From contig NC_134032.1 of NCBI RefSeq assembly GCF_964204645.1, positions 13,194,275-13,258,274 on the forward strand: a DNA stretch of 64,000 nt, in the 5' to 3' direction. Below are positions 495-30,178 of this stretch, in pieces (position 1 is the stretch's first letter; the number at the start of each line of letters is the position of its first letter). The DNA is from Tubulanus polymorphus. Lineage: Eukaryota; Animalia; Nemertea. A model generated the notes under the pieces. That model did not search any database and had not been told where the DNA came from. It worked only from the letters and a program-made list of their open reading frames with translations. The translations under genes were made by a program, and so were the position numbers.

Positions 495-517
495 TTATTG
501 TAGATAAATTTTTACTT

Positions 518-1904: not shown

Positions 1905-2015
1905 CTTACCATAGTAGTTGTCGAATAAACACTATAATCCGTGTAAACTGTAGATAAATGAAGAAATCCCACTCTTCGAATTTAAAATTATACGATTAAA
2001 TTTATTATTATGAAA

Positions 2016-7761: not shown

Positions 7762-8793
7762 ATGACCGATTGTCAAAGATCTCCGCTGAAAATCTGCACT
7801 ATAGTTGTCAGTATTTTAGCAGTAGGTTCTTTGCTGTTTTCCTACACGCAATTCGAGATTTCTAATTTGACTAAGCATAATTCGCTAGCTGGAGTAGTCT
7901 ATAAATACATTACGGTAAGATCAAATGCGCTAATGGTCTATCCACTGGACGTCAAAGAACCGGACTCGCCGGAAATACCGTGTACAATGCGAAAAACCAA
8001 ATATTCCGGGTCGACTCCAATATGCGTTTACAAAGCGACAGTTGACACAGTCGTGTCCAAGGCTATATTGATAAACGGGGCTTGGGAACCTCACCTAACC
8101 GAACTTATGGAGGAACTTTTCCGTCGCGATCCTAATTTGAACTTGTTCGATTTCGGGTCGAATGTCGGCTCCTTCGCGATAACGGCGCTAAAAAGCGGTC
8201 GTAAAGTCGTCGCGGTCGATCCTAAAGCGGGGAATCTGCGCCGAATCAGAATGTCGATTCATAAAGGTCATCTGACCGGCGCGGTTTTAGTACAGAACGG
8301 TTTATCGGACTTCCGAACAACGGCGACTTTTCACCAAGACCCTGGAAACAACGGCGGGTCATACCTCACCGATACTAAACTGAATAACACACACGGTATA
8401 ATAGCAAAAGTGAAATTTCAAGTTAAAACAATTCTAGTGACCGATTTGATTCCAGTGATTAGATTTAAACGAGCTATGATTAAAATTGATATTCAGGGTT
8501 TCGAACTGAAGGCGTTTCAACATCTCGAGTCGTTTTTAAAAACGGTAGATATTCCGTTTATACTGATGGAATGGATCTGGGTGAAGGTCGGAGAGACTGG
8601 TAATCGTATGGTAGCGCTGATGTATAAACTGGGCTATCAATGTTTCATTCCATCAATAAATGGAGCTGCGTGTCCGGGTAATGAACACACTAAATGGCCG
8701 TATGACGTAGTTTGGGTGAGAACTAATGCCACTGTTTACCCTGGAGCATATGAAGCTATTCGTATATGGAACGGGAAACCAAAACCTTCCTAG
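7762..8793 (+). CDS. FkbM/Methyltransf_21-family SAM-dependent methyltransferase, type II membrane anchor, 1 catalytic module (343 aa)
   Basis: Polypyrimidine tract plus CAG acceptor at 7747, then ATG 7762. TM helix ICTIVVSILAVGSLLFSY. Motifs GAWEP, DFGSNVG, VVAVDP, KIDIQGFE, ILMEW. Confidence 0.9.
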   Translation: MTDCQRSPLKICTIVVSILAVGSLLFSYTQFEISNLTKHNSLAGVVYKYITVRSNALMVYPLDVKEPDSPEIPCTMRKTKYSGSTPICVYKATVDTVVSKAILINGAWEPHLTELMEELFRRDPNLNLFDFGSNVGSFAITALKSGRKVVAVDPKAGNLRRIRMSIHKGHLTGAVLVQNGLSDFRTTATFHQDPGNNGGSYLTDTKLNNTHGIIAKVKFQVKTILVTDLIPVIRFKRAMIKIDIQGFELKAFQHLESFLKTVDIPFILMEWIWVKVGETGNRMVALMYKLGYQCFIPSINGAACPGNEHTKWPYDVVWVRTNATVYPGAYEAIRIWNGKPKPS

Positions 8794-9104
8794 AGAGAGA
8801 TACCGGTCAGGTGTTCTTTGAATATATATTCTTGTACACAAATTTCGATTTATATACATCACGAAGCTAAAACTGCAATTTTTGCCAAGTGAAAATGATA
8901 TCTTAAATGATATCTGCGAGAAAACAGGCATTTTGCTGTCACCAACTTCTGACGTGCCATTCGGGTATAGATTCAATACATCTGTCTCGATTTATATGAA
9001 TGGTTGTTTGGTTAGCATGCATGGACGTATAAGCTAGATGAAGAAAGAACTCCACAATGGTTATGATTATTTGACCTAATTCTATTCTTCCGGAAAAGCT
9101 GATT

Positions 9105-9200
9105 TCTTAAGCAGTTTTTTACAAAAGAGCGGTTAGCGTCAATAATGACAATTTATTCCGCCTTAAATTTATATAAAATATCATCGTGTTTACAAGCAAT
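9105..9200 (-). pseudogene. Possible viral-type phospholipase A2 fragment
   Basis: IACKHDDILYKFKAE*IVIIDANRSFVKNCL (ANRCF in the copy at ~18850-18945). One base from CxxHDxxY and one base from ADxxF. Confidence 0.35.
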
Positions 9201-9277
9201 TGGGATATCAGTGGTCCATCCAGAGGTCGTGAGGTCAACACACCACTCGCCACCACAACTAATTTTTTTTCTTATAA

Positions 9278-9604
9278 ATGGGAGATAGAAAAGCATTCTT
9301 AGCGAAAATAAATAACAAAATAAAACCAGCAAAAAAACAATTTGAAATAAAAAAGTTAGCCGATGTTACAAAAGAAATTGAACATAAAATATTAAAATTA
9401 GAAAAGATAAAAACTAAATATGGAGAGAAAGTATCTGCAAATTTAAGTTACTGTAATGTTAGTACTACACGAGAATTTAAAGTATTTGTACCTGATAAAT
9501 GGGTTTCATTGAGTAAAGAGGAATTAACAGATTTAGAAGGATTTAAAATAATCTATCATGGAAAAAATGAAGACGGTCATCATGATTTAGAAATTGTTGA
9601 TTAA
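9278..9604 (+). CDS. Hypothetical 108-aa Maverick-associated protein (KTKYGEKV...VFVP motif), intact
   Basis: Open ORF with TATAAATG start. Its 3' end is also seen at 1-16. The copy at 19023-19348 has a premature stop. Confidence 0.55.
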   Translation: MGDRKAFLAKINNKIKPAKKQFEIKKLADVTKEIEHKILKLEKIKTKYGEKVSANLSYCNVSTTREFKVFVPDKWVSLSKEELTDLEGFKIIYHGKNEDGHHDLEIVD

Positions 9605-10106
9605 ATAAAAAAAATTAAATAATAGAAATAATAAAATAATAAAATCAATTTAATATCTAGAATCCGAAATGACCTATCTGGACAATTTAGTTGCTCCTCA
9701 TAGATAAACAAAAGTAGTGAGATATTTAATTGATTTAAAATATTGTTTAATGAATTTAATTTTTTTTTGCTTTTTTTCTAAAATATTAGTCCATTTTTTT
9801 GTATAGTGAACTTTCGAATTTCAACAGTAGTAAAATTTCATTTGATCTTTTATACCAACTACATCCAATCAAAATGAATACAATTACAAATCCAGCTGCA
9901 AAGTATAGTAGAAATAACAGTATTATTACCGTTATTATTAACATTTCCATTGTTTATTTTTTCTTTTATAGCTTTTTTGAATTCTCTCGATTTAATTCCT
10001 AATTGCCGAGACCATTCAATTTGTTTTCGAGTTCTCGGTTTTTTCTTCACAGTTAATTCCTTCAATTCTTTTACCACGCTCATTTATTGTAGATAAATTT
10101 TTACTT

Positions 10107-10628
10107 TCAATATTTGAAATTATTTGATGTTATAACTCCAGTTGATAATAGCGTCATAAATCCACCTTATTGAAATGATAAATATCCAATCCATTTATTT
10201 AATTCAGTCGTAACTAAATAATCATTTTTCAAATCGGAATATAATCTATTTTCATCTTGAATTGGTAGCATATAATTACATAATTTACTATAACCTTTTA
10301 CTACATTTTCTGATATTGCATCATTGATTCTAGCTATTCTTGCAGTTTCATAGATCTTAAATAATTTAATAATTTGGTCTGGTTTCATTGTATCTAATTC
10401 ATTATACGTTAAATTCTTACCAATAAAATTTTTACATTTTCCAGACGCTATAAATATTTCTAATTGATGTTTGCAATAAAGATTATATTCAAAATTATTA
10501 TTTGTAGTAATATCATTTAACGTACTATTATCTGGAGTTAATTTTGTTTCTGATATACCTAAATCATCCAAAGTTTTTTCAATTTGAACATCACTATTTT
10601 AAGATTTTATTTTCTTTTTACCTCCCAT
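10107..10628 (-). pseudogene. Conserved hypothetical Maverick-type protein, copy B
   Basis: Near-identical to 518-1039, with stops at the same codons. Confidence 0.6.
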
Positions 10629-10700
10629 TTATATAACAAAAGAATTAGTTGTGTTGTTGCAACTAGAATTTAACTAGAATGTAACTAAAAATATAATAGA

Positions 10701-11325
10701 TTAAAAAGCTAGTTGAATTTGAATGAATTCATATTCAAATGGGTGTTGTAATCGAAATGGTAATTTTGATCTTTTATTATTTTTCAATTTAACCATATAT
10801 TCATTATGTAAATCATGCGGAATAATAAAATTTTCCTCAAGCGCATTTTTCATTGATTTTCTATCTTTATTGTAGAATAATACTAAAAATCTAATGTTTT
10901 CTCTAAAATCTTTAACAATTGAATTATATTTTTGATTTTAATCCCACGTTGTTATCCCAAAATGTCTCCCAGAGAAAGCTAAATTACATAGTTCACTTTC
11001 TCTAATTTTTGAATCATGTAAATTTGCACAATCATCTATGATAAATAATGTATTTGTTCCTTTATAAATATCAATTGCTATTTTAATACAATTTCCTAAA
11101 TTTTCTTTAACTGTTTTAGGATCTAATACAATAAATTTATCATTTCAAGTAATATTTCTATTATAAGTTTGATTAAATTCATACGTTGGACAAAATAATA
11201 CTACATTATCAAAATAGTTTTTACAAATAGTTTCTAATAAATTTAATATAAAATAAGTTTTTCCGCAATTTGTTACACCAGAAATTAACATATTATGGGG
11301 TTCAAATATAAATAATTCTTTTGAA
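10701..11325 (-). pseudogene. A32-like packaging ATPase, copy B
   Basis: Same motifs and the same two stops as 1112-1736. Confidence 0.9.
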
Positions 11326-11493
11326 CTAAAATAAAACTTTTGATGTTTGTACAGCATGTTTTCTGGATAGTTGAAAACATACATAACGACTGAAAATATC
11401 AATTATATTTAATATCCACCAATAATCATCATTATCTTTCTTAAGATTTTCCATATCAATCAAATCACCCTGCCACTGTTGATCTACATAATT
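11326..11493 (-). pseudogene. c-integrase fragment, copy B
   Basis: DQQWQGDLIDM...IIDIFSRY, near-identical to 1737-1904. Confidence 0.85.
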
Positions 11494-11604
11494 CTTACCA
11501 TAGTAGTTGTCGAATAAACACTATAATCCGTGTAAACTGTAGATAAATGAAGAAATCCCACTCTTCGAATTTAAAATTATACGATTAAATTTATTATTAT
11601 GAAA

Positions 11605-11646
11605 CCACAACGTTTCGGCCGTTGACTAACAGCCATCATCAGGTGG
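11605..11646 (-). ncRNA. Minimal hammerhead ribozyme motif, duplicate of 2016-2057
   Basis: Identical sequence in unit 2. Confidence 0.75.
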
Positions 11647-11956
11647 AATGACCAGAAAAACAAGTTACAAAGCATATAAACTCACAGGATCTAAAATAGA
11701 AGCAGTGTGTCAAAACTAAAGATAAACAGACCAAACAATAAAACATCAAGGGGTACCGTGGAAACCACAGCAATTCTAAACAAACTAAAGAGTAAAAACA
11801 AATTATGTAACTAAGTGAAGTGGACTGAAGAGGGTGGCGATAACAGAGTGACATCCACCCAAATCTAATAAAGAGTTGATGTGTCTGGATAATAATTGGT
11901 TATGTGGAGAAAAACCAGTATAAAATCCAAAACATTTTCATTTTCATCATCTAACT

Positions 11957-12316
11957 TTATTTTAATTTTATTAAACTCTCACTTTTTATGAATCTAACTG
12001 AAAATGTATCTTCACTTCTAATTTTTATTCGTGCTTTTCTACTAATATCTTGCGCTAATGTTTCTAAATTATATAATCCTGGTGTTAGCATAAGATGGAC
12101 CCATTTATGATTACTTTTATTAAAAATTAAAAAGGCTCTATGATCATCAGTTTTATCTGATACATTATAAAAAGAGTTACATAAACTTTCATTTACTAAT
12201 TCTAAATCTACACAATTTTTAAATTCTCTATCTAATTGTACTAGTAAATTATGTGATTTTGAATTTGTGAGTTTTCTGGAATAAACAAATATTCTATATT
12301 CTTTTAATTCAATCAT
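11957..12316 (-). pseudogene. Probable minor capsid protein fragment, copy B
   Basis: Translation identical to 2368-2727. Confidence 0.55.
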
Positions 12317-15274
12317 TATTCATTACACAAAAAATTACCTCGAACCACTAAAAATTAATTTAATAAAATTTTTCCTAAATAAATGGAAGATTGTGTTGTG
12401 CCAAACTGTAGACATTCCGAAGAATTATTCAATAAACATATCCTGTATTCGTAAATGTCGTTTGTATCAGTGTCAGCGTCTTGGTCTAACCACTCATTTC
12501 GGGGAAGTTCCGGACCAACTATATAAGTTAAGGTTGGAGCCAAAATAATGGAAAATCTTCTCTCAAGTAAGTGACGGACTCGAAACGGTAAATCGTATTC
12601 GGGGGCACCCGTACGAATTCCACTGTTTTGGCGATTTCAGATTCGGCCAAAATATTGATCAACGTATGAAAGATTCTTGCATATGATTAACGACGCGAAC
12701 ATACACATACATTTCAATTTTCCAATTTCGTTCCGGAGCTGGGAAAATAATCAGTGCGAGTCGTCACTCAATAGAAAGAATTCGACTACGCATTACGTGC
12801 TTACCTCATTATAAGCTTATGTGGTAAATAAAGTTGATCCAAACTTTCATTTCAAATAATTTGAATTAAACGGATTCTATATCTACGTTGGCTAAATATC
12901 CATTCGATGGATGTAGCCTAGCTCTAGTGTCGATGAATCCCATGACGGGGTAAGTTCTACAAGACAAAATCTAAACTGAGCTAAAATCTCGAATGTGAAC
13001 CATACAATCGAATAGAATCGTTTATTTCTCACTAAGCAAACTTGGCACATGTAGAAGATACAAGAATCGATACGATAGAAATTTATAATTTACAAAACTT
13101 TAAAAACAAACGAAAATGAAAAATAGGATAGAATTGATAACAGAGATAATATACGTATATGTACTTCAGTAATTTGAGGCCAACATTAACACATCTAGCG
13201 AGTTAAGCGGTTATTAGGATATCACTATTTGCAGCATTAAGTAATTAGATAGTGTCAGGTCTATTATGAACCTCTCGCCCCTGAAAGTATATATGGAATC
13301 GAAACGAAACGACTGTTGACACATTGTTTTATATCATTAATACATGTTACCTTCATATTTTTCTACTCGTAACCGAAGGTCAATATCATTGACGTGCAAA
13401 CGGAAACCGATATTACAGCAGCAATTAGCTTGTACTTATAATATAAAATGTGAGTGCGAAAAAAAGTACAACGTTTCAAATTTCGAAAGCACTCGACATT
13501 ACATTATAGTCTCTATACGTAAACGGGAAGCAATTGACACTTTTTTCGCGATCTTTCATATGCGTGCGAAAGTAAATAGAATAAATGCTGAATAAACTTC
13601 AAAGAAAATAGATGGATCGGAAATGTACGGTTAACAGATTTTGTTGGTCATTGCTCCGCGTTGCGTTCTATCGCTGATTGAAAAGTCTATAAAGCTGTCA
13701 CACGTGATACCTGAAATACGTCGATCACTCGTTGTTTACTGCAGTTCTTAGTGAATGTGAATGTTTTTTCATCGTTAAGATTACGAATCAGGTAAGCCGA
13801 AATGCGCTGACGGGGCCCATTTTACCCGAAAGACTTAACAGTTTTTATAGATCTTTTAAAGTATGTGGTCGTGAACTTTGAAATGCCTTCCACTGATTTG
13901 AAATGATAGAAAATTCGACGGTTTTTAAATTGATACCATGTCTATAGGTCTAAATGATTAGTAAAGAATAAATAGTTTCAAGTCGGAAATAGGTGTAGGT
14001 CTCGCGTTTGACAGTCGAGATTATACTTGGTACTTTGGAACTCATTTTATAATTTACATTCAAAGTATATTGAAAATTCGGCTCTTCGCTCACAGTCGGA
14101 GTTGTAGAAAATCTCGAAGTCACATAAACATCGCACCACTTATTGTGATTTATGGTACCAATAAAACCAAAATGAGACATCTTGATTCGAGAAAATAATG
14201 TTCACTAATTATTCAATATTTCTCATTCTTTTTATTTCATTGACTTCGATTACAAATCTACCACACCTGCCGGGAAAGAAACAGGGGGTTTGGTTTTGAA
14301 ATCGAAAATCGAAAGTCGAGCACAGATTAAGTTGGATGATCGGTCCAATTTACTTGGAAATTTTGGTACCGGTACAATCTTCTAAGCAGCCTGAACCGGC
14401 AAGCGACTGATTAGCGTTATATGTCTTGTTCATGATACATGTATTTCAGTTATTATGTGAACGTAATCCCGAATGCCTTGTTATTTTCTATATCGAAAAT
14501 AAAACCAATTTTCTGTTCTTAAAAACGATCAATGTGACACCGACCGGCTGCCATCTCTCGATTATTCATTATTGATTAACATTATTTTACCGTTGCGTTC
14601 ATACAATGCGATATATAGGCACGGTACATGCAAGTTTGCGCTGTTACATTTGCCAATAACGGATAACATGAAATGTAAGAACAAGCCAGCGAGTATGGTA
14701 CGAATAAAGCCGGTGCTTGTGCCGGTGCAAGAGTTATATAAGAAAAAAAAAGAAGAAAAACTTAGAGGAAGTAATGAAACATATTATGTTAAAATACAAT
14801 GACAGCATCTATCTATATCTTAAAGTGAGTAGTAAGTTCGACGGTTCTTAATCAAAGAGAAATGATTTGATGAAGAGCCATATATCGAATAAAGAAATAA
14901 AGAAATATCCATGTTGAATGACATAGAATGTTCGATTAAATTAGTAGACAGCTAAAAGTAACTTTCAGATTTAAGATGAAAGGGATATGCATTTCAAATA
15001 CCATAGGACCTTGAATTTCAAGACTGTATTTTCTTGATTAACGCTGTATCGTTCTGGAATTATGTTTGAATTTTTTTAATCTAGTTTCTCGGGCCAATGC
15101 CCAAGGCGCCTATCTTTTGAACTTTATTTTATGTAGGAACATCGACAGGTTTTGCGAATAACCTGGCTTATTCATAAAGTTAGCAACTGTGTTTAGGCTG
15201 GGATTGGTGGATATATTAGCAGGGAGTAGTTCACTTCTTTCTCTGTTGTAAAAGGGACATATACATAGAACATG

Positions 15275-15933
15275 GTTATGACCGCGGCATTTCACTCTCA
15301 AAGAGCCAGTATCAACAACAATTTAATTGATACTTACAGCTTTAAGTGGTCAAACTCACACTGAGCATCGCTGCTTCGCTGGACCCCAGCTGCTTGTTAC
15401 TATGGTTACAGGCAAGAGTGAATAAAGAGCAAAACTTTTCCACACTTAATCCAAGAAAATGAAGTAATAAGCAATGAAAATTCAGTTTTGAAGTCTTGTT
15501 GCATTCAAGAGTGAATATTTTCGCTGGATGCTGAAGTCAGTGTTTACATTATGAAGTGTCAAAACCAATTTCCAAGTTGAAAGATTATATTTAGACGGTG
15601 TTTCAAGCAAAACAACAGCACTCGACTTATGAGATGATTCCAGATTATATATGCTCACACTCTGAGGAGTTTATAGATGTACAAAATCAATCAGATTGAA
15701 TTTGCCACATGACATGATTATTCCCAAAATGAAACTAAAAAATTCAAGAAAGGATTTTGTAAAATTGTAAAAATTGGAATTTTATATCCTTTAATGAATG
15801 GCCAGGATGGTATATTATTCACTCTTGAATGCAGTAGTCGCTTGACCTCAATTACTCGTAAGGCTGAGTGATAGAAACCACAGGGATCCCGATATGTTAG
15901 TGTAACAACTCTTTGATGCGCCGCGGTCATAAC
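15275..15933. mobile_element. Non-autonomous inverted-repeat element, copy in unit 2
   Basis: Same 14-bp inverted ends as 6427-7084. Confidence 0.65.
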
Positions 15934-16612
15934 TACTGGGATAGACTTTACACGCAGATCAATGATAATGTACCGTCTTCCTAGAGATTTACGAAAAAGT
16001 ACACTCATTTTAGACGGTTGCCGACCTAACTCAGGTTACGATTCGTTATAACGACTGGAGCATTATCAGAACGCATGAAACACTGGCCATTTATTCTCCT
16101 CATTTCGTTATTCTCCTTATTATCGAGGTGATGAAAATCAGCAGAATATTGTAATGTACTCTAATTAACGAAATAACTGCGCTCCTTCAGATATAAACTC
16201 TATCAGACGTCACAGTTTGGATGCAATGTACACGTTTGTACGAAGTGAGGTAATATCGAATTTACGCCTCAATGCCACCCGACGCTTAACTGGCCCTTTT
16301 AATCTCGACGACTTATGTATCGAATTTGTTGATAGTTTCGAACGCGATGCGTGTGACACGAGGGTACTCGACATTGTGTTGCGCGATGGTAGGGTAACGA
16401 ATATCAATCATTTAGCTTTCGTTTTTACATAAAGGTAGATGTACCGTACATATTTCGTATTGGAATGAAACTGGGGTGAAGGACGGAGAGGCCGATGTAT
16501 AAACTGGGCTATTAATGTTTCATCCCGTCACGAGAAGCGAGGTATAAACCTTTATAGTCATATGTTTGATTTCTTTTTCATTTTCTTTTATCCAACAGGT
16601 GAACAAAGAATA

Positions 16613-18538
16613 ATGACCGATTGTCAAAGATCTCCGCTGAAAATCTGCACTATAGTTGTCAGTATTTTAGCAGTAGGTTCTTTGCTGTTTTCCTACACGC
16701 AATTCGAGATTTCTAATTTGACTAAGCATAATTCGCTAGCTGGAGTAGTCTATAAATACATTACGGTAAGATCAAATGCGCTAATGGTCTATCCACTGGA
16801 CGTCAAAGAACCGGACTCACCGGAAATACCGTGTACAATGCGAAAAACTAAATATTCCGGGTCGACTCCAATATGCGTTTACAAAGCGACAGTTGACACA
16901 GTCGTGTCCAAGGCTATATTGATAAACGGGGCTTGGGAACCTCACCTAACCGAACTTATGGAGGAACTTTTCCGTCGCGATCCTAATTTGAACTTGTTCG
17001 ATTTCGGGTCGAATGTCGGCTCCTTCGCGATAACGGCGCTAAAAAGCGGTCGTAAAGTCGTCGCGGTCGATCCTAAAGCGGGGAACCTGCGCCGAATCAG
17101 AATGTCGATTCATAAAGGTCATCTGACCGGCGCGGTTTTAGTACAGAACGGTTTATCGGACTTCCGAACAACGGCGACTTTTCACCAAGACCCTGGAAAC
17201 AACGGCGGGTCATACCTCACCGATAGTAAACTGAATAACACACACGGTATAATAGCAAAAGTGAAATTTCAAGTTAAAACAATTCTAGTGACCGATTTGA
17301 TTCCAGTGATTAGATTTAAACGAGCTATGATTAAAATTGATATTCAGGGTTTCGAACTGAAGGCGTTTCAACATCTCGAGTCGTTTTTAAAAACGGTAGA
17401 TATTCCGTTTATACTGATGGAATGGATCTGGGTGAAGGTCGGAGAGACTGGTAAACGTATGGTAGCGCTGATGTATAAACTGGGCTATCAATGTTTTCAA
17501 ACCGCTCTGAACGGCGCTCGATGTCCGGGTAACGACCACACTAAATGGCCGTATGACGTAGTTTGGGTGAGAACTGATGCCACTGTTTACCCTGGAGCAT
17601 ATGAAGCTATTCGTATTTGGAACGGGAAGCCACCAGTCACACATATAACGACAGCTTCTCCAATAAACGGCGTCGCAATCGTCTATCCGCTCAACATCAA
17701 AGAACCAGACTCGCCGGAAATACCGTGTACAGCGCGTAAAACCAAATATTCCGGGGTGACTCCAATATGTGTTTATAACGCAACAGTTGATACGGTCGTG
17801 TCTAAGGCTATATTGATAAACGGGGCTTGGGAACCTCACCTAACCGAACTTATGGAGGAACTTTTCCGTCGCGATCCTAATTTGAACTTACTCGATTTCG
17901 GGTCGAATGTCGGCTCCTTCGCGATAACGGCGCTAAAAAGCGGTCGTAAAGTCGTCGCGGTCGATCCTAAAGCGGGGAACCTGCGCCGAATCAGAATGTC
18001 GATTCATAAAGGTCATCTGACCGGCGCGGTTTTAGTACAGAACGGTTTATCGGACTTCCGAACAACGGCGACTTTTCACCAAGACCCCGGAAACAACGGC
18101 GGGTCATACCTCACCGATACTAAACTGAATGACACACACGGTATAATAGCAAAAGTGAAATTTCAAGTTAAAACAATTCTAGTGACCGATTTGATTCCAG
18201 TGATTAGATTTAAACGAGCTATGATTAAGATTGATATTCAGGGTTTCGAACTGAAGGCGTTTCAACATCTCGAGTCGTTTTTAAAAACGGTAGATATTCC
18301 GTTTATACTGATGGAATGGATCTGGGTGAAGGTCGGAGAGACTGGTAAACGTATGGTAGCGCTGATGTATAAACTGGGCTATCAATGTTTCATTCCATCA
18401 ATAAATGGAGCTGCGTGTCCGGGTAATGACCACACTAAATGGCCGTATGACATAGTTTGGGTGAGAACTAATGCCACTGTTTACCCTGGAGCATATGAAG
18501 CTATTCGTATATGGAACGGGAAACCAAAACCTTCCTAG
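16613..18538 (+). CDS. FkbM-family methyltransferase, type II membrane anchor, 2 tandem catalytic modules (641 aa)
   Basis: Acceptor at 16598, ATG 16613. Exactly 894 bp longer than gene 1. Modules joined by KPPVTHITTASPINGVAIVYPL. Confidence 0.9.
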   Translation: MTDCQRSPLKICTIVVSILAVGSLLFSYTQFEISNLTKHNSLAGVVYKYITVRSNALMVYPLDVKEPDSPEIPCTMRKTKYSGSTPICVYKATVDTVVSKAILINGAWEPHLTELMEELFRRDPNLNLFDFGSNVGSFAITALKSGRKVVAVDPKAGNLRRIRMSIHKGHLTGAVLVQNGLSDFRTTATFHQDPGNNGGSYLTDSKLNNTHGIIAKVKFQVKTILVTDLIPVIRFKRAMIKIDIQGFELKAFQHLESFLKTVDIPFILMEWIWVKVGETGKRMVALMYKLGYQCFQTALNGARCPGNDHTKWPYDVVWVRTDATVYPGAYEAIRIWNGKPPVTHITTASPINGVAIVYPLNIKEPDSPEIPCTARKTKYSGVTPICVYNATVDTVVSKAILINGAWEPHLTELMEELFRRDPNLNLLDFGSNVGSFAITALKSGRKVVAVDPKAGNLRRIRMSIHKGHLTGAVLVQNGLSDFRTTATFHQDPGNNGGSYLTDTKLNDTHGIIAKVKFQVKTILVTDLIPVIRFKRAMIKIDIQGFELKAFQHLESFLKTVDIPFILMEWIWVKVGETGKRMVALMYKLGYQCFIPSINGAACPGNDHTKWPYDIVWVRTNATVYPGAYEAIRIWNGKPKPS

Positions 18539-19763: not shown

Positions 19764-21264
19764 AACGTTTCAAACGTACAACGTTTCAAATTTCGAAAAC
19801 ACTCGTCATTACATTATAGTCTCTGTACGTAAACGGGAAGCAATTGACACTTTTTTCGCGATCTTTCATATGCGTGCGAAAGTAAATAGAATAAATGCTG
19901 AATAAACTTCAAAGAAAATAGATGGATCGGAAATGTACGGTTAACAGATTTTGTTGTTAAATCTACAATATTGTTGGTCTTTTACATACACTCCCAGGCG
20001 GGCCAATGTGCGTTTAACCTACGAGCAATCATCTCAACCTAGGATAATTCAGATGGTTCAGATATTTGCTCGTAGGTTTAACTATTGTCGCATTGTTTGA
20101 ATGAATTCCCAGTGTAGGAGGACTGTGTGGGCCTGTTTGATTTTTGATGTGCCTGTTCAGGTGTTCAGATACGTCGTTTCACAAGGCATAACGCATCAGT
20201 TTGATCAGAGTTTTGTTCTATATAAAAAACAATTCAACTTAATCAAATAATCTGCACAGTCACCCGAGTTATACATGCTGAATAAACACTGGGGATTTCT
20301 CGTCTTGAAAAGTCTATAAAGCTGTCACACGTGATACCATAAATACGTCAATCACTCGTTGTTTACTGCAGTTCTTAGTGAATGTTTTCATCGTTAAGAT
20401 TACGAATCAGGTAAGCCGGAATGCGCTGACGGGGCCCATTTTACCCGAAAGACTTAACAGTTTTTATAGATCTTTTAAAGTATGTGGTCGTGAACTTTGA
20501 AATGCCTTCCACTGATTTGAAATGATAGAAAATTCGACGGTTTTTAAATTGATACCATGTCTATAGGTCTAAATGATTAGTAAAGAATAAATAGTTTCAA
20601 GTCGAAAATAGGTGTAGGTCTCACGTTTGACAGTCGAGATTATACTTAGTACTTTGGAACTCATTTTATAATTTACATTCAAAGTATATTGAAAATTCGG
20701 CTCTTCGCTCACAGTCGGAGTGTTTCCCAAGTTGTAGAAAATTTCGAAGTCACATAAACATCGCACCACTTATTGTGATTTATGGTACCAATAAAACCAA
20801 AATGAGACATCTTGATTCAATATTTCTCATTCTTTTTATTTCATTGACTTCGATTACCAATCTACCACACCTGCCGGGAAAGAAACAGGGGGTTTGGTTT
20901 TGAAATCGAAAATCGAAAGTCGAGTACAGATTAAGTTGGATGATCGGTCCAATTTACTTGGAAATTTTGGTCCCGGTTCAATCTTCTAAGCAGCCTGAAC
21001 CGGCAAGCGACTGATTAGCGTTATATGTCTTGTTCATGAAACATGTATTTCAGTTATTATGTGAACGTAATTCCGAATGCCTTGTTATTTTCTATATCGA
21101 AAATAAAACCAATTTTCTGTTCTTAAAAACGATCAATTTGACACCGACCGGCAGCCATCTCTCGATTATTCATTATTGATTAACATTATTTTACCGTTGC
21201 ATTCATACAATGCGATGTATAGGTACGGTACATGCAAGTTTGCGCTGTTACATATGCCAATAAC

Positions 21265-23714
21265 AGTTGCTAATAAAACGCTAAAATCGTTGAAACCAGG
21301 TAGCAAAGGTAATAGGAGAAAATATAAACAGAAGTGGTTTGATAATTCTTGCTTAGCGGCCAGACGTTCTTTGAAGAAAAAAGCTAGAAACTTAGCTGCA
21401 GCAAATAGTATTAGTGATATCGATCACAGTAGATTAGCAGATTATTATGGTTCAAAAAAGTCGTATAAAAACCTACTTAGATCTAAGAAAAAAGCTTATA
21501 CTGACAAAATAATAGGCGACATTAGCAAATTAAACGGCTCCAATAATGGCAGTAAAACTTTCTGGAAATTGGTCAACAACCTTAAGAATCCCGCTAACAA
21601 ATGTTCTTCAAGTATCAGCATGGATGAGTGGTATAACTATTTCAAGTCACTTAGTTCTCCTAACATTAACGCTGGATCTACGTCGTCTTGTCTAAAAGAA
21701 TACCTCAAACATCTTGAAGAGCAACCATCAACATTCGGTATTCTGGATTTTAAAATTACTGAGGATGAAATTTTGCGAGCTTCTAGAAAACTGAAACCTA
21801 ACAAAGCATCTGGTTTGGTTTCTATTTTGAATGAATTGTTAAAATGTAGTATTGATATCATGATGCAGCCACTTTTAAAAGTTTTTAATGCCATATTAAC
21901 TTTTGGAAAGTATCCGGAGGAATGGTCGAGAGGGATTATAATTCCGCTATTTAAAAAGGGTAATAAAGACGATGTGTCCTGTTATAGAGGTATAACTATA
22001 ACAAGTAATTTAAGTAAACTTTTTTGTATCATTTTAAACGAACGTCTGACATCCTATGTAAAAGATAATGGTATCCTTTCGGTGAACCAGATAGGTTTTC
22101 AAAAAAAGTCAAGAACTGCTGATCACCTTTTTACCCTTAAGCATCTGATTGATAAAAATACCCAGAAACGTAAACAGAAATTTTTCTGTGCATTTATTGA
22201 TTTCTGGCGTGCCTTTGATAGCGTTATTCACGATGCTCTTATGATTAAGTTGGTGAAATGTGGTATCAGTGGTCATTTTTATGATGTGATAAAGGATACG
22301 TATAGTAGCGCTGTCTCCCAAGTCCAGTGCGATACAGGTTTATCTCAAGAATTTCCTGTTAAAATTGGTGTTCACCAAGGCAATATTTTAAGCCCTTTAC
22401 TTTTTAACTTATTTATAAATGATATAAACCAGCTTTTCTTGGACTGTGACGTTCCTGTTTTATATGATCGTATCGTACCCTGTCTCATGTATGCCGATGA
22501 TCTTATTTTATTTTCGCACTCGAGCAAAGGCCTAAAAAAGTCCTTAGCTAAGCTTGAGCTTTATTGTAAATTCTGGGGGCTGGAAGTAAATGTTCCTAAA
22601 TCGTGTATTGTTGAATTCAACAAAGCAGGTAAATTAGACTGCACAAATAGCTACATTTTTAACGATGATGTTATAGATTGTGTTAAAAGTTGCAACTATC
22701 TGGGTTTCAACATCCATTGTAATGGCAAATTCAATCTGCTACAAGACTCACTGTTGAGTAAGGGTTTAAGAGGGCTTTTCAATCTAACTAAAATGCCTGG
22801 TTTCAAGGATTTATGTATTCTACAACAACTACAGCTTTTTAACAGTTTACTCAAACCGATAGTTATGTATGGTAGTGAAGTTTGGGGAGTTGTGCCCTAT
22901 ATGCCATTTCTAAAGAAACCAAATGGGTCACTCACGGATATGGGTTTACCATAACAAATGGGTAGTGCAAAAGCTGCAGTCAAGATTTTTTAGGTTCATA
23001 ATGGGTCTTCATTCTAAGGCTCCAATTTTACCTATTCTTGGTGATTTGGGAGAGGTTCCACTTTATATTGAGATTACTATGTCAGCTTTGAAGTACTGGA
23101 GGTCAGTTATGTCGTCGGGTAATAGCAAATCATTGATCTACTTGTCTTTTCTAGAACAATATGAAGATGACAGGGAGGGCAAATTCAATTATATATCTAC
23201 CGTTAAATCAATTCTATAAAATTTAGGGTACTCAAATGTTTGGAACAACTTGGGGCATTATTCGAATAGCATTATTCTGGGTATTAGAAAGCGTCTGTCA
23301 GCTATCTTTGTGGATCTCTGGCATAAGGACATAAGATCAAGTGATCATTCCCGTTATAATTTTTATAAAGCAGTTAAAGTGAGTTTTAAGTTAGAAAAGT
23401 ATATATTAGTGCTAAAAGGATTTAACCTCAGAAATGCTGTTGCTAAATTACGGACGTCTACTCACAGCTTAATTATTGAAAAAGGTAGACACCGCGGTAT
23501 AGAAAAGGAAAATCGTTTGTGCAATATTTGTAATGTGTTGGACGATGAATGTCACTTTTTGTTCCATTGTAAAAGAGTTGCCAATCTGAGAAAGGAATTA
23601 AATATAGCTATCTTAGACGTTAATAGTTTAATCTCCACTTTCGACAACCTAAACCCTACAACCAGCATTGTTCAGCTAGCCAAATTTATTAAACTCGGTC
23701 TGCCATTGTCCTAA
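21265..23714 (+). pseudogene. Reverse transcriptase ORF2 of the LINE (no endonuclease; frameshift near 22930, stop at 23217-23219)
   Basis: ORFs 21176-22954, 22923-23219 and 23250-23714 join into one RT plus CCHC protein. Confidence 0.9.
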
Positions 23715-23911
23715 TTTTTCTTCGTTTAATGTTCTGTATATTTTCAATTATGTTTTAACTCATCTGTAATTAGTGTTAATCATGCTTCATTTTATTATTT
23801 GTTTATCTCCTATTATGTATATACTTGATTTTACCGAATTTGTATCAGTTGCAAACAATGTTTTATTAATGTTTATGCTGAATAAAGATTGAATTGAATT
23901 GAATTGAATTA
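21265..23911 (+). mobile_element. 5'-truncated non-LTR retrotransposon (LINE, RTEX-like) in the intron of FkbM gene 3
   Basis: TSD GCCAATAAC at 21256-21264 and 23912-23920; empty sites in units 1 and 2. RT motifs YRGIT, QIGF, FIDF, GVHQG.ILSPLLF, YADD, YLG. C-terminal CNIC...HFLFHC. AATAAA at 23881 and (TTGAA)n tail. Confidence 0.93.
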
Positions 23912-24936
23912 GCCAATAACGGATAACATGAAATGTAAGAACAAGCCAGCGAGTATGGTACGAATAAAGCCGGTGCTTGTGCCGGTGCAAGAGTTATATA
24001 AGAAAAAAGAAAAGAAAAACTTAGAGGAAGTAATGAAACATATTATGTTAAAATACAATGACAGCATCTATCTATATCTTTGATCTTAAAATAGGGATTG
24101 TCCCCATTATTTACTTATTTGGCTGGTAAATTTTGTTTGATTTTTTCGATTGAGTGTCCCTTACAGACCCACCACACCTGCCGGGAGCGAAACAGGGGGT
24201 TTGATTTTGAAATCGGAAATCGAAGTACAGATATAGATGTGTGATCGGCGGTCGAGTTAACAGAATATTTTAAAATCGAAGTACATAATTGGAACTTCGG
24301 TTCCGGTTCATCCAAACAATCTTCCAATCTATATCTTAAAGTGAGTATTCGACGGTTCTTAATCAAAGAGAAATGATTTGATGAAGAGCCATATATCGAA
24401 TAAAGAAATAAAGAAATATCCATGTTGAATGACATAGAATGTTCGATTAAATTAGTAGACGGCTAAAAGTAACTTTCAGATTTAAGATGAAAGGGATATG
24501 CATTTCAAATACCATAGGACCTTGAATTTCAAGACTGTATTTTCTTGATTAACGCTGTATCGTTCTGGAATTATGTTTGAATTTTTTTCACTAGACCGGG
24601 TTCTGTAAGTTGATTTAGAGTTGTTTGAAAAACATTCTGTGAAGATTTGGGGAGCATCATTGTTATAACATCGGTGACAAATAGGAGCGACACTTTTAAG
24701 GACGTACATGTGATGATATGAAATGGTGTATCTTTTCATATATATCTAGATAGATATAATTAATGAATAAGCTATGTACATCAAAAGTGTTAATATTAAA
24801 TGACATACCAAAAATTGATTCCACTTTAGGCTAACAGAAATTGATACATTTTTTCTTATTTTCTGCTTTAAAGTTGACCCGGCCGGCCCCCTATCTACCT
24901 TGTACGATATTTATTTTTCAAATCACAATCAATCTA

Positions 24937-25435
24937 CTGTCTGTCACACCTACTCTCCGTGCGACGTTTTGGTCCGTAATTTCGTTAATAATCGGTTTAT
25001 CTACCTTTATTATGCGTCAATTTGTTCAGTGAGGAATTTGCATTCAGAAATAAACAACAATTTTCACTTAAGTTGTTTTTTTTTCATTTATGAGCGATAG
25101 TTTACTCAGCATACGCTCGCGTAATGCTGAAAAATCCGCTCCGCGGACGCTCGGAAACGTTACAGTGACGTCATCACCTGCTCATTAGCATATCAAAATA
25201 CAGTAGGTGGCGCCACATGATGGGCCATAAAAGCCGTTTTTCAGCATTACGCGAGCGTATGCTAGGTAAACTATCGCTGATAGAAGAAAACACAAACAAA
25301 TTTATGCCAGTTCATGATTTATTTCTGAATGCAAATTCCTTACTGAACAAATTGATGCATAATATTTACAGATCAACCGATTATTAACGAAATTACGAAC
25401 CAAAACGTCGCACGAAGAGCATGTGTGACAGACAG
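24937..25435. mobile_element. MITE with ~200-bp imperfect TIRs and TA TSD (Tc1/mariner-like)
   Basis: TA|CTGTCTGTCACAC ... GTGTGACAGACAG|TA, with inner arms CAGCATACGCTCGCGTAATGCTGAAAA and its inverse. Confidence 0.85.
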
Positions 25436-25589
25436 TAACCATAACCGACCCTGCAGTTATAGAAATGAACTGGAAATAACCGTTTAGCCCCCAGGATTTG
25501 TAATATAACAGTACTAATAATGATGATATTCAGTTCGCTGATGGTATTCAGTTACTAATCTAGTTTCTCGGGCCAATGCCCCAGGGGCC

Positions 25590-25855
25590 TATCTTTTGAA
25601 CTTTATTCTATGTAGGAACATCGACAGGTTTTGCGACTAACCTGGCTTATTCATAAAAGTTAGCAACTGTGTTTAGGCTGGGATTGGTGAATATATTAGC
25701 AGGGAGTAGTTCACTTCTTTCTCCGTTGTAAAAAGGACATATACATAGAACATGGAATTCATCTTCGATCACTTGTAAATTACAAAATAGGCAGATTCTG
25801 TCAGTATATGGTGTAGGGGGCGCGCCCATCGTCCGGTTTCTACACGCAGATCAAT
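25590..25855 (-). mobile_element. Old LINE 3' remnant (CCHC region)
   Basis: DLRVETGRW...DRICLFCNLQVIEDEFHVLCICPFY. Interrupted copies at ~6290-6426 and ~15110-15274. Confidence 0.75.
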
Positions 25856-26458
25856 GATAATGTACCGTCTTCCCGACTTAACTCAGGTTACGTTATAACG
25901 TCTGAAGCATTATCAGAACGCATGAAACACTGGCCATTTATTCTCCTTATTTCGTTATTCTCCTTATTATCGAGTTGATGAAAATCAGCAGAATTGTAAT
26001 GTACTCTAATTAACGAAATAACTGCGCTCCTTCAGATATAAACTCTATCAGACGTCACAGTTTGGATGCAATGTACACGTTTATACGAAGTTAGGTAATA
26101 TCGAATTTACGCCTCAATGCCACCCGACGCTTAACTGGCTCTTTTAATCTCGACGACTTATGTATCGAATTTGTTCGATAGTTTCGAACGCGATGCGTGT
26201 GACACGAGGGTATTCGACATTGTGTTGCGCGATGGTAGGGTAACGAATATCAATCATTTAGCTTTCGTTTTTACATAAAGGTAGATGTACCGTACATATT
26301 TCGTATTGGAATGAAACTGGGGTGAAGGACGGAGAGGCCGATGTATGAACTGGGCTTTTAATGTTTCATCCCGTCACGAGAAGCGAGGTATAAACCTTTA
26401 TAGTCATATGTTTGATTTCTTTTTCATTTTCTTTTATCCAACAGGTGAACAAAGAATA

Positions 26459-29400
26459 ATGACCGATTGTCAAAGATCTCCGCTGAAAATCTGCACTATA
26501 GTTGTCAGTATTTTAGCAGTAGGTTCTTTGCTGTTTTCTTACTCGCAACTCGAGATTTCTAATTTGACTAAGCATAATTCGTTGGCTGGAATAGTTTATA
26601 AATACATAACGGTAAGATCAAATGCGCTAATGGTCTATCCACTGGACGTCAAAGAACCGGACTCACCGGAAATACCGTGTACAATGCGAAAAACTAAATA
26701 TTCCGGGTCGACTCCAATATGCGTTTACAAAGCGACAGTTGACACAGTCGTGTCCAAGGCTATATTGATAAACGGGGCTTGGGAACCTCACCTAACCGAA
26801 CTTATGGAGGAACTTTTCCGTCGCGACCCACATTTGAACTTACTCGATTTCGGGTCGAATATCGGCGCTTTTACGGTAACGGCGCTAAAAAGCGGTCGTA
26901 AAGTCGTCGCGGTCGATCCTAAAGCGGGGAACCTGCGCCGAATCAGAATGTCGATTCATAAAGGTAATCTGACCGGCGCGGTTTTAGTACAGAACGGTTT
27001 ATCGGACTTCCGAACAACGGCGACTTTTCATCAACATCACAGCAACAACGGCGGTTCATACCTCACTGATAGCAATTTGAATTTAACGTATGGTTATAAC
27101 GCCGCAGTGAAGTTTCAAGTTAGAACGATTTTAGTGACCGATTTGATACCGTTGATAAAATTCAAACGAGCTATGATTAAGATAGATATTCAGGGTTTCG
27201 AGTACAAGGCTTTTCGAAATCTCGATGCGTTATTGAAAGTTGTAGATATACCCTTTATACAAATGGAATGGGTGATGGTTAAGTTAGGAGAGACTGGTAA
27301 TCGTATGGTAGCGCTGATGTATAAACTGGGCTATCAATGTTTTCAGAGCGTACTAAATGGCGCTCCTTGTCCGGGTAACGACCACACTAAATGGCCGTAT
27401 GACGTAGTTTGGGTGAGAACTGATGCCACTGTTTACCCTGGAGCATATGAAGCTATTCGTATTTGGAACGGGAAGCCACCAGTCACACATATAACGACAG
27501 CTTCTCCAATAAACGGCGTCGCAATCGTCTATCCGCTCAACATCAAAGAACCAGACTCGCCGGAAATACCGTGTACAATGCGAAAAACTAAATATTCCGG
27601 GTCGACTCCAATATGCGTTTACAAAGCGACAGTTGACACAGTCGTGTCCAAGGCTATATTGATAAACGGGGCTTGGGAACCTCACCTAACCGAACTTATG
27701 GAGGAATTTTTCCGTCGCGATCCTAATTTGAACTTGTTCGATTTCGGTTCGAATGTCGGCTCCTTCGCGATAACGGCGCTAAAAAGCGGTCGTAAAGTCG
27801 TCGCGGTCGATCCTAAAGCGGGGAACCTGCGCCGAATCAGAATGTCGATTCATAAAGGTAATCTGACCGGCGCAGTTTTAGTACAGAACGGTTTATCGGA
27901 CTTCCGAACAACGGCGACTTTTCATCAACATCACAGCAACAACGGCGGTTCATACCTCACTGATAGCAATTTGAATTTAACGTATGGTTATAACGCCGCA
28001 GTGAAGTTTCAAGTTAGAACGATTTTAGTGACCGATTTGATACCGTTGATAAAATTCAAACGAGCTATGATTAAGATAGATATTCAGGGTTTCGAGTACA
28101 AGGCTTTTCGAAATCTCGATGCGTTATTGAAAGTTGTAGATATACCCTTTATACAAATGGAATGGGTGATGGTTAAGTTAGGAGAGACTGGTAATCGTAT
28201 GGTAGCGCTGATGTATAAACTGGGCTATCAATGTTTTCAGAGCGTACTAAATGGCGCTCCTTGTCCGGGTAACGACCACACTAAATGGCCGTATGACGTA
28301 GTTTGGGTGAGAACTGATGCCACTGTTTACCCTGGAGCATATGAAGCTATTCGTATTTGGAACGGGAAGCCACCAGTCACACATATAACGACAGCTTCTC
28401 CAATAAACGGCGTCGCAATCGTCTATCCGCTCAACATCAAAGAACCAGACTCGCCGGAATTACCGTGTACAATGCGAAAAACTAAATATTCCGGGTCGAC
28501 TCCAATATGCGTTTACAAAGCGACAGTTGACACAGTCGTGTCCAAGGCTATATTGATAAACGGGGCTTGGGAACCTCACCTAACCGAACTTATGGAGGAA
28601 CTTTTCCGTCGCGATCCTAATTTGAACTTGTTCGATTTCGGTTCGAATGTCGGCTCCTTCGCGATAACGGCGCTAAAAAGCGGTCGTAAAGTCGTCGCGG
28701 TCGATCCTAAAGCGGGGAACCTGCGCCGAATCAGAATGTCGATTCATAAAGGTAATCTGACCGGCGCAGTTTTAGTACAGAACGGTTTATCGGACTTCCG
28801 AACAACGGCGACTTTTCATCAACATCACAGCAACAACGGCGGTTCATACCTCACTGATAGCAATTTGAATTTAACGTATGGTTATAACGCCGCAGTGAAG
28901 TTTCAAGTTAGAACGATTTTAGTGACCGATTTGATACCGTTGATAAAATTCAAACGAGCTATGATTAAGATAGATATTCAGGGTTTCGAGTACAAGGCTT
29001 TTCGAAATCTCGATGCGTTATTGAAAGTTTTAGATATACCCTTTATACAAATGGAATGGGTGATGGTTAAGTTAGGAGAGACTGGTAATCGTATGGTAGC
29101 GCTGATGTATAAACTGGGCTATCAATGTTTTCAGAGCGTACTAAATGGCGCTCCTTGTCCGGGTAACGACCACACTAAATGGCCGTATGACGTAGTTTGG
29201 GTGAGAACTGATGCCACTGTTTACCCTGGAGCATATGAAGCTATTCGTATTTGGAACGGGAAGCCACCAGTCACACATATAACGACAGCTTCTCCAATAA
29301 ACGGCGTCACAATCGTCTATCCGCTCAACATCAAAGAACCAGACTCGCCGGAAATACCGTGTGCAACGCAAAAAACCAAATATTCCGGGTCGACTCCAAT

Positions 29401-30178
29401 ATGTGTTTATAACGCGACAGTTGACACGATCCTGTCCAATGCTATATTGAAAAATGGGGCTTGGGAACCTCACCTAACCGGACTCATGGAGGAACTTTTC
29501 CGTCGCGACCCACATTTGAACTTACTCGATTTCGGGTCGAATGTCGGCGTTTTTACGGTAACGGCGCTAAAAAGCGGTCGTAAAGTCGTTGCGGTCGATC
29601 CTAAAGCGGGGAATCTGCGCCGAATCAGAATGTCGATTCATAAAGGTAATCTGACCGGCGCGGTTTTAGTACAGAACGGTTTATCGGACTTCCGAACAAC
29701 GGCGACTTTTCATCAACATCACAGCAACATCGGCGGTTCATACCTCACTGATAGCAATTGGAATTTAACGTATGGTTATAACGCCGCAGTGAAGTTTCAA
29801 GTTAGAACGATTTTAGTGACCGATTTGATACCGTTGATAAAATTCAAACGAGCTATGATTAAGATAGATATTCAGGGTTTCGAGTACAAGGCTTTTCGAA
29901 ATCTCGATGCGTTATTGAAAGTTGTAGATATACCCTTTATACAGATGGAATGGGTGATGGTTAAGTTAGGAGAGACTGGTAATCGTATGGTAGCGCTGAT
30001 GTATAAACTGGGCTATCAATGTTTTCAGAGCGTACTAAATGGCGCTCCTTGTCCGGGTAACGACCACACTAAATGGCCGTATGACGTAGTTTGGGTCAGA
30101 ACTGATACCAAAGTTTACCCCGGAGCATCGGAAGCTATTCGTATTTGGAACGGGAAACCAAAACCTTCGTCGAGGTGA
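26459..30178 (+). CDS. FkbM-family methyltransferase, type II membrane anchor, 4 tandem catalytic modules (1239 aa)
   Basis: Acceptor at 26444, ATG 26459. Linker recurs at 27481, 28375 and 29269 (period 894 bp). Uninterrupted frame; all modules keep DFGSNxG and KIDIQGFE. Confidence 0.9.
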   Translation: MTDCQRSPLKICTIVVSILAVGSLLFSYSQLEISNLTKHNSLAGIVYKYITVRSNALMVYPLDVKEPDSPEIPCTMRKTKYSGSTPICVYKATVDTVVSKAILINGAWEPHLTELMEELFRRDPHLNLLDFGSNIGAFTVTALKSGRKVVAVDPKAGNLRRIRMSIHKGNLTGAVLVQNGLSDFRTTATFHQHHSNNGGSYLTDSNLNLTYGYNAAVKFQVRTILVTDLIPLIKFKRAMIKIDIQGFEYKAFRNLDALLKVVDIPFIQMEWVMVKLGETGNRMVALMYKLGYQCFQSVLNGAPCPGNDHTKWPYDVVWVRTDATVYPGAYEAIRIWNGKPPVTHITTASPINGVAIVYPLNIKEPDSPEIPCTMRKTKYSGSTPICVYKATVDTVVSKAILINGAWEPHLTELMEEFFRRDPNLNLFDFGSNVGSFAITALKSGRKVVAVDPKAGNLRRIRMSIHKGNLTGAVLVQNGLSDFRTTATFHQHHSNNGGSYLTDSNLNLTYGYNAAVKFQVRTILVTDLIPLIKFKRAMIKIDIQGFEYKAFRNLDALLKVVDIPFIQMEWVMVKLGETGNRMVALMYKLGYQCFQSVLNGAPCPGNDHTKWPYDVVWVRTDATVYPGAYEAIRIWNGKPPVTHITTASPINGVAIVYPLNIKEPDSPELPCTMRKTKYSGSTPICVYKATVDTVVSKAILINGAWEPHLTELMEELFRRDPNLNLFDFGSNVGSFAITALKSGRKVVAVDPKAGNLRRIRMSIHKGNLTGAVLVQNGLSDFRTTATFHQHHSNNGGSYLTDSNLNLTYGYNAAVKFQVRTILVTDLIPLIKFKRAMIKIDIQGFEYKAFRNLDALLKVLDIPFIQMEWVMVKLGETGNRMVALMYKLGYQCFQSVLNGAPCPGNDHTKWPYDVVWVRTDATVYPGAYEAIRIWNGKPPVTHITTASPINGVTIVYPLNIKEPDSPEIPCATQKTKYSGSTPICVYNATVDTILSNAILKNGAWEPHLTGLMEELFRRDPHLNLLDFGSNVGVFTVTALKSGRKVVAVDPKAGNLRRIRMSIHKGNLTGAVLVQNGLSDFRTTATFHQHHSNIGGSYLTDSNWNLTYGYNAAVKFQVRTILVTDLIPLIKFKRAMIKIDIQGFEYKAFRNLDALLKVVDIPFIQMEWVMVKLGETGNRMVALMYKLGYQCFQSVLNGAPCPGNDHTKWPYDVVWVRTDTKVYPGASEAIRIWNGKPKPSSR

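Follow-up and report, generated by a model that had tools for sequence, protein, structure and literature searches.

Bacterial FkbM-family enzymes (e.g., PDB entry 2py6) are soluble, single-domain methyltransferases with a class I Rossmann fold, and several of them methylate sugars (e.g., NoeI). Changes in the copy number of whole in-frame units through unequal crossing-over are known from kringle IV-2 of human LPA and from the repeats of mucins and adhesins, and the poxvirus K3L gene is a precedent for a gene "accordion." Signal-anchored type II Golgi O-methyltransferases of plants (i.e., QUA2/DUF248 and GXMT/DUF579) methylate glycans in the lumen using S-adenosylmethionine (SAM). Here, we describe a 64,000-nucleotide stretch (the window) of chromosome OZ123233.1 (16.68 Mb; assembly GCA_964204645.2; window position 1 at approximately record position 13,194,274) of the palaeonemertean ribbon worm Tubulanus polymorphus (Nemertea), which contains FkbM-family genes with one, two, or four copies of the catalytic module. 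On balance, we favor the reading that these genes form a tandem array of membrane-anchored methyltransferases that has been reshaped by recombination and whose products would act in O-methylation in the lumen of the secretory pathway.

The Tubulanus proteins share with the bacterial enzymes the catalytic domain, motif I, the K-x-D motif, and the class I Rossmann fold. However, the sequence similarity between them is low, and the Tubulanus proteins differ in being animal proteins that are membrane anchored, predicted to be cysteine paired, and tandemly multiplied. As in LPA, the mucins, the adhesins, and K3L, whole units appear to have been gained and lost via homologous recombination between long repeats, whereas the unit in Tubulanus is a complete enzyme domain and the variation is seen between paralogues. 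The lumenal SAM-dependent methylation of glycans by signal-anchored enzymes that we consider for the array has its likeness in the plant proteins, although these belong to unrelated families and have a single catalytic domain.

The window contains three forward-strand open reading frames (ORFs; 7615..8793, 16562..18538, and 26345..30178). Read from the first methionine conserved in all copies (positions 7762, 16613, and 26459), they encode proteins of 343, 641, and 1239 amino acids (aa), designated A, B, and C (Table 1). DNA fetched around recorded proteins revealed two additional genes, Z and Y, which lie upstream of window position 1, are intact, and carry two modules each. The window therefore cuts an array of five genes and 11 modules (order, Y-Z-A-B-C; 2-2-1-2-4 modules) that extends over approximately 43 kb. 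A preliminary description of this DNA had reported three adjacent paralogs with a common N-terminal anchor and one, two, and four modules; this account stands, but it understated the extent of the array. No further modules were found within 10 kb upstream of Y or downstream of C inside the window. The NCBI (XP_) model of gene Y is a single uninterrupted ORF of 640 aa that starts at the conserved methionine, upstream of which the frame remains open for 14 codons only. All comparisons of copy number concern paralogues within one haplotype assembly.

The seven module copies in the window are arranged head to tail within genes, with a start-to-start spacing of exactly 894 bp (i.e., 298 codons). 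The modules had been described as exact; this holds for their in-frame period but not for the copies themselves, which are 85.4 to 99.7% identical. Membership in the FkbM family was borne out by profile searches, in which PF05050 (Methyltransf_21) matched A, B, and C in one, two, and four stretches with 35.3, 69.1, and 151.2 bits, respectively (cut-off, 22.7; E value for the four stretches of C, 3.9e-44), and TIGR01444 matched A with 60.7 bits (cut-off, 37.7). Other Pfam matches of the four-module protein (e.g., Trs65 IgD1, PnpD_N, HAD, and FtsJ) comprised 0 stretches each and were rejected as weak hits that add up along a protein made of repeats.

Motif I (D-x-G-x-x-x-G) and the K-x-D motif are represented by D130, G132, G136, K241, and D243, all of which are invariant in 90 homologues. 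All 11 modules keep motif I and K-x-D-x-Q-G-x-E, and all 20 positions conserved in at least 90% of the 90 family members are kept in each of them. Four cysteines, two of which are conserved in 71 to 77% of the family, occupy fixed positions in every module, as does one N-glycosylation sequon. No module contains a stop codon. Over its 1239 codons, gene C has 81 and 121 stops in the two alternative forward frames, so that its open frame is far beyond chance, in agreement with the earlier statement that the methyltransferase frames are open. Given that every family-conserved residue is kept and that the modules appear to fold independently, each module is most likely an independent active site.

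Several features of the modules are traces of recombination among them. B1 is distinguished from B2 by 55 sites, at which the single module of gene A is B1-like up to nucleotide (nt) 558 and B2-like from nt 720, with four exceptions. This one switch identifies A1, as judged from its site pattern, as a single-crossover chimera of B1 (5' part) and B2 (3' part). The simplest reading is that A originated when one 894-bp period was lost from a B-like two-module gene; the reciprocal of this contraction may have occurred instead, as one haplotype does not fix the direction. At the other extreme, only about 3 of 861 positions separate C2 from C3. Two types of module can be told apart by their central 300 nt, alpha (Y1 and C1 to C4) and beta (Y2, Z1, Z2, A1, B1, and B2), with >97% identity within a type and approximately 84% between alpha and beta. 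The genes can accordingly be written as alpha-beta (Y), beta-beta (Z and B), beta (A), and alpha x 4 (C). The outer thirds of the modules are mosaic, with groupings that differ from those of the central segment. Between alpha and beta, the synonymous divergence (dS) of the core is about 1.0 with a nonsynonymous-to-synonymous ratio (dN/dS) of 0.17 to 0.23, whereas the dS of the first third is 0.07 to 0.14. Two old module types have thus been kept while unequal crossing-over and gene conversion homogenized their flanks and changed copy number. The persistence of old types amid homogenized flanks, the A1 chimera, and the near-identity of C2 and C3 together indicate that unequal recombination and gene conversion reshape the array at both levels. 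The claim that copy number differs at the level of genes and of domains is thereby supported by direct traces of recombination (i.e., the A1 chimera, the segment-wise mosaics, and the contrasting dS values).

At the gene level, self-BLAST resolved the array into collinear duplication units of 8.9 to 10.5 kb. Each unit is made up of approximately 0.8 kb of post-gene sequence, a 4.06-kb AT-rich block, approximately 3 kb of pre-gene sequence, and the gene. Positions 1 to 4058 match 9589 to 13646 at 99.4% identity, positions 4815 to 8781 match 13645 to 17632 at 98.3%, and the AT-rich block is 99.3 to 99.4% identical between units. Unit C, at approximately 92% identity, is older than the others. 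Such similarity makes the region hard to assemble, and together with the few differences between C2 and C3, it could be taken to mean that the two- and four-module genes are assembly artefacts (i.e., mis-expanded tandem repeats) and that only single-module genes are real. We consider this very unlikely: most modules differ from their neighbors by 3 to 14% and have position-specific signatures, the chimeric and mosaic patterns are coherent, an independent NCBI model exists for a two-module gene, and relatives with two to five modules occur in other assemblies and in metagenome contigs.

The AT-rich blocks (1-4058, 9589-13646, and partly 19473-19763; 23 to 33% GC) contain remnants of virus-like genes. 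A search of the broken ORF pieces, each taken separately and unjoined, identified an A32-like packaging ATPase (1115-1813, reverse strand) in three same-frame pieces split by stops, with Pox_A32 matches at E values of 2.5e-6 (profile positions 9 to 57) and 0.0057 (positions 79 to 129). A piece of an rve integrase core (1740-1931; E value, 0.0066) is a weak match below the curated cut-off. This remnant of the spacer appears to be a degraded Maverick/Polinton-like element, older than the duplication of the units. Its position approximately 6 kb upstream of each gene raises the question of whether the methyltransferase gene is cargo of the element and the array a product of repeated insertions, and FkbM genes are reported from giant viruses (PMC12085832). 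We regard this scenario as extremely improbable, in that the whole flanks are collinear, a sign of segmental duplication in tandem and not of separate insertions, the genes have 43 to 44% GC compared with 23 to 33% for the remnant, and the closest relatives are genes on nemertean and mollusc chromosomes. A retroelement has been inserted in the spacer between B and C only, is absent from the homologous spacers, and has small ORFs up to position 23714. The neighboring viral ORFs had been described as dead, which is true of the A32-like ATPase in each spacer but not of the 592-aa reverse-transcriptase ORF of this retroelement, which is open.

The residues of the modules are under purifying selection, as pairwise dN/dS values (NG86) among the 11 modules have a median of 0.32 and range from 0.18 to 0.41. 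The youngest informative pair, Z1-B1, has a value of 0.18. The family had been called rapidly evolving, a term that fits its copy number and mosaicism but not its residues. These values also bear on the possibility that the genes are recent, silent, or degenerating copies amid abundant transposons and that their frames are open only for lack of time. The protein collection contains no models of B and C and a model of A without the anchor, dead virus-like and retroelement sequences fill the spacers, and a dispersed single-module paralogue on chromosome OZ123231.1 (L003:10001-10955) is broken. This last copy has an internal deletion or frameshift, is represented at NCBI by a 196-aa fragment (XP_074653643.1), and is likely a pseudogene. 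Nevertheless, decay of the array is unlikely. Alpha and beta modules have remained intact despite their age (dS up to approximately 1), with dN/dS of about 0.2, and low dN/dS is also found in the Z1-B1 pair; the 20 conserved residues are kept throughout the 11 modules; and the dispersed copy itself shows how decay looks.

The 165-nt segment that encodes the anchor and stem is 100% identical between A and B and 95% identical in C. It specifies an 8-residue tail, a hydrophobic stretch of approximately 20 residues, and a stem of approximately 25 residues ahead of the catalytic modules, a layout of which the preliminary description had proposed the tail and the helix and which was recovered in the translations and in an AlphaFold2 (AF2) model. 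Hydrophobic N termini with preceding basic residues also occur in distant multimodule relatives. The AF2 model of gene A, built from a 90-sequence alignment (predicted local distance difference test [pLDDT], 88.1; predicted template modeling score [pTM], 0.81), has an N-terminal helix (residues 8 to 37), a low-confidence stem (40 to 57), and a compact alpha/beta domain. All Foldseek hits listed for this model in the PDB are class I SAM methyltransferases, including the FkbM entry 2py6 (probability, 1.00; target-normalized template modeling score up to approximately 0.6), consistent with a predicted class I Rossmann-like methyltransferase fold. A profile search of PDB sequences yielded weak motif I matches only, with 2py6 at an E value of 7e-4. 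In the model of gene B, both modules are confident (mostly pLDDT >90) and joined by a linker (338 to 350) with pLDDT <50. This linker confidence and the drop of pTM to 0.52 provide weak evidence that the modules are independent units on a flexible tether, the alignment being shallow over module 1. The linker itself is rich in Pro, Thr, and Ser and approximately 16 residues long.

Ahead of gene A, the 57 nt that begin with GT at 7691 and end with AG at 7746-7747 are a candidate for an in-frame intron or for the end of an intron in the 5' untranslated region. A remnant of the 3' part of a module (approximately 40 to 70 nt, at about 7620-7679) precedes this candidate intron and recurs ahead of Z, B, and C. 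In the case of Z, A, and B, the upstream sequence includes a 40-nt match to module nt 690-729.

The wider family became visible only through an exhaustive HMMER search, which returned 3377 proteins at an E value of ≤1e-3. Word-indexed homologue searches with the one-, two-, and four-module proteins found almost nothing beyond the 286-aa NCBI model of gene A, a cluster representative (P0002), and one Mytilus protein. The best HMMER relatives are 30 to 38% identical and mostly single-domain proteins of 300 to 400 aa. Those with names come from nemerteans (Tubulanus and Lineus) and molluscs (Crassostrea, Saccostrea, Mytilus, Patella, Haliotis, Tegillarca, and Bulinus), and all are annotated as uncharacterized. 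The multimodule architecture had been considered novel, a view that these relatives contradict. They include (i) a five-module Mytilus protein of approximately 1697 aa (XP_076081479.1) with orthologues in four Mytilus species; (ii) a two-module protein of Mytilus edulis (modules 53% identical); (iii) KAH9491626.1 of Bulinus truncatus (two modules, 95% identical); (iv) a Tegillarca protein with two near-identical modules; and (v) two proteins from ENA assembly ERZ25069870, P0004 (three modules, 95 to 97% identical) and P0005 (two modules, 99% identical), each encoded by one ORF with a hydrophobic N terminus. No paper describing multimodule animal FkbM proteins, and no genome note for the assembly, was found in the literature that we searched.

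The Mytilus five-module protein resembles the Tubulanus proteins in having an N-terminal hydrophobic anchor followed by tandem FkbM modules. However, its modules are old (49 to 68% identical to one another) and only approximately 30% identical to those of Tubulanus, and it varies little across Mytilus species in length (1669 to 1713 aa) or in sequence (one 90%-identity cluster). In a maximum-likelihood tree of 45 modules, sequences are grouped by lineage, and those of Tubulanus (all 11 modules) are united in a single clade with 100/100 support, apart from the Mytilus modules. Orthology to the Mytilus protein was rejected, as the tree contained no one-to-one pairing of modules. Module multiplication in Mytilus thus looks independent of that in Tubulanus, and the tree fits repeated, independent multiplication across lineages; concerted evolution could give the same grouping and mask an older shared origin. 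P0004, P0005, and KAH9491626.1 are recently multiplied relatives that resemble the Tubulanus proteins in that a continuous ORF encodes an anchor and, behind it, tandem catalytic modules that are nearly identical. They come from other lineages, have a module period of approximately 310 aa, and are known from single proteins rather than arrays. A JGI metagenome contig (Ga0454334_079892; 7190 bp) encodes two tandem multimodule FkbM ORFs. Since the modules of P0002, which represents the cluster of these ORFs, pair one-to-one with Mytilus modules 1 to 3 in the tree, this contig is probably bivalve DNA in an environmental sample.

We propose that each gene of the array would encode a single-pass protein in which a short N-terminal tail, a hydrophobic helix, and a stem are followed by one, two, or four complete 298-residue modules. 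The modules would be class I SAM-dependent methyltransferases that each fold alone, like beads on a flexible string. Because each module measures exactly 894 bp (3 x 298) and lacks introns, misaligned homologous recombination between modules would add or remove whole in-frame catalytic units, and the same process between duplication units would add or remove whole genes. Gene conversion would homogenize the outer thirds of the modules, with the central alpha and beta types staying apart. The proteins would have a type II topology, with modules facing the lumen of the secretory pathway, and may O-methylate glycans or other secreted acceptors. Alpha and beta modules may differ in acceptor preference, and a higher module number would provide more catalytic sites per anchor.

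A lumenal orientation and glycan O-methylation are reasonable, though tentative, readings of an anchor and stem placed ahead of the catalytic modules and of the cysteines and sequon kept in every module, which are suggestive of the lumen, together with the existence of bacterial sugar-methylating members and of methylated glycans in molluscs, planarians, and nematodes (PMC6935376; PMC8699351). The array proteins are therefore plausible candidates for enzymes that O-methylate invertebrate glycans. Methylated N-glycans are documented in molluscs, planarians, and nematodes (PMC6935376). In Caenorhabditis elegans, the methyltransferase that modifies N-glycan fucose was still to be identified in 2023, and samt-1 (Golgi SAM-transporter pathway) is cited along with methylated glycans in the same work (PMC7614267). 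The import of SAM into the Golgi for polysaccharide methylation is treated in a preprint (bioRxiv 10.1101/2021.07.06.451061). The literature that we searched contained no paper tying FkbM proteins to animal glycans.

A different set of acceptors, such as small metabolites or toxins, lipids, or protein side chains in mucus, is possible for lumenal or secreted methyltransferases of this kind, and we give this alternative appreciable though minor weight. FkbM, the founding member, has a macrolide hydroxyl as its methyl acceptor, many small-molecule toxins are secreted by nemerteans, and no structural match points to a sugar acceptor. Glycans are nevertheless favored by the sugar-methylating bacterial enzymes (e.g., NoeI), by a weak match of one relative to the profile of Vibrio RfbT, by the expansion of the family in molluscs, whose glycans are methylated, and by the signal-anchor design, which is typical of glycan-modifying enzymes.

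Other observations weigh against anchored, multimodule enzymes that methylate glycans. The protein collection that contains the NCBI models for the species has no entry identical to the product of B or C, and eight alternative versions of the three ORF products, which differ in start or stop, were looked up there by exact match without a hit. The 286-aa NCBI model of gene A (P0001) covers only positions 7933-8793 and lacks the anchor. In the Tubulanus proteins, the two sides of the helix differ little in net charge, and the near-identity of C2 and C3 is known from the assembly alone. The Foldseek hits in the PDB, being generic methyltransferases with no solved structure close enough, gave no clue to the acceptor. 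FkbM-family enzymes also methylate nonsugar hydroxyls, so that family membership does not imply a glycan substrate, and we know of no information on methylated glycans in nemerteans.

The surroundings of the array contain additional features. Directly upstream of it (L006:1-2126, reverse strand) is an unrelated class I methyltransferase gene with Methyltransf_11/25/Ubie-type matches. Downstream, approximately 15 kb from the candidate glycan methyltransferases, the window includes VWD, C8, and TIL exons of a von Willebrand/mucin-like gene (44845-47355, reverse strand), the TIL ORF of which continues into tandem repeats with a 39-bp unit (13 residues) that carry N-x-T sequons. A family of 39- to 42-bp tandem repeats is found at 42773-43270 and 45183-45937, in opposite orientations and approximately 2 kb apart. 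Blocks of 94-bp and 91-bp tandem repeats (33249-33501 and 37315-37566), located approximately 3.8 kb apart, are largely reverse complements when their consensus units are compared by eye and may be subterminal repeats of a DNA transposon. A 66-bp unit is repeated at 60056-60636 (8.8 copies; 92% identity).

Table 1. Features of the FkbM methyltransferase array and its spacers (window positions unless a record is named)
Feature	Position	Strand	Remarks
Gene Y	L006:10001-11923		640 aa, two modules; XP_074656480.1; ~10.5 kb further upstream than Z
Gene Z	L006:20483 to L001:1285		641 aa, two modules; ends ~780 bp before window position 1
Gene A	7762..8793	+	343 aa; signal anchor and one FkbM module (beta type)
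Gene B	16613..18538	+	641 aa; anchor and two modules (beta-beta)
Gene C	26459..30178	+	1239 aa; anchor and four modules, all alpha type in central segment
N-terminal anchor and stem segment	7762..7926	+	Copies at 16613-16777 and 26459-26623
Module A1	7927..8790	+	Single-crossover chimera of B1 and B2
Module B1	16778..17671	+	894 nt including linker
Module B2	17672..18535	+	
Module C1	26624..27517	+	
Module C2	27518..28411	+	99.7% identical to C3
Module C3	28412..29305	+	
Module C4 (terminal)	29306..30175	+	94-95% identical to C1-C3
Candidate intron, 57 nt	7691..7747	+	GT...polypyrimidine...AG, read from the sequence; ends 14 nt before start codon
Segmental duplication unit A (spacer and gene A)	1..9588	+	Self-BLAST
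Segmental duplication unit B	9589..19460	+	Self-BLAST
Segmental duplication unit C	19461..30194	+	More diverged (~92%), interrupted by retroelement
Broken virus-like genes in AT-rich block 1-4058	1115..1931	-	Block recurs at 10704-11520 and upstream of window
Reverse-transcriptase ORF, open	21176..22954	+	592 aa; PF00078, E value 5.6e-29

As a tentative and rather doubtful extension of these results, the lophotrochozoan FkbM clade may represent the missing Golgi-lumenal glycan O-methyltransferases of invertebrates, with different specificities of alpha and beta modules and with module and gene numbers that are polymorphic and under selection. If this were true, Y would be a hetero-bifunctional enzyme and C a tetravalent, mono-specific one, and the selection could be, for example, an arms race with lectins that recognize methylated mucus glycans or are blocked by them. 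Natural glycan O-methylation is widespread in molluscs, planarians, and nematodes and is a target of innate-immune and fungal lectins. A signal-anchored FkbM clade with predicted cysteine pairs that is expanded in lophotrochozoans would provide concrete candidates for the glycan methyltransferases. The locus is also a clear example in nature of how recombination adds and removes entire catalytic domains in frame, and its two distinct, old module types, together with the recurrence of the architecture across lineages, may make it useful for studying the origins of multivalent enzymes.

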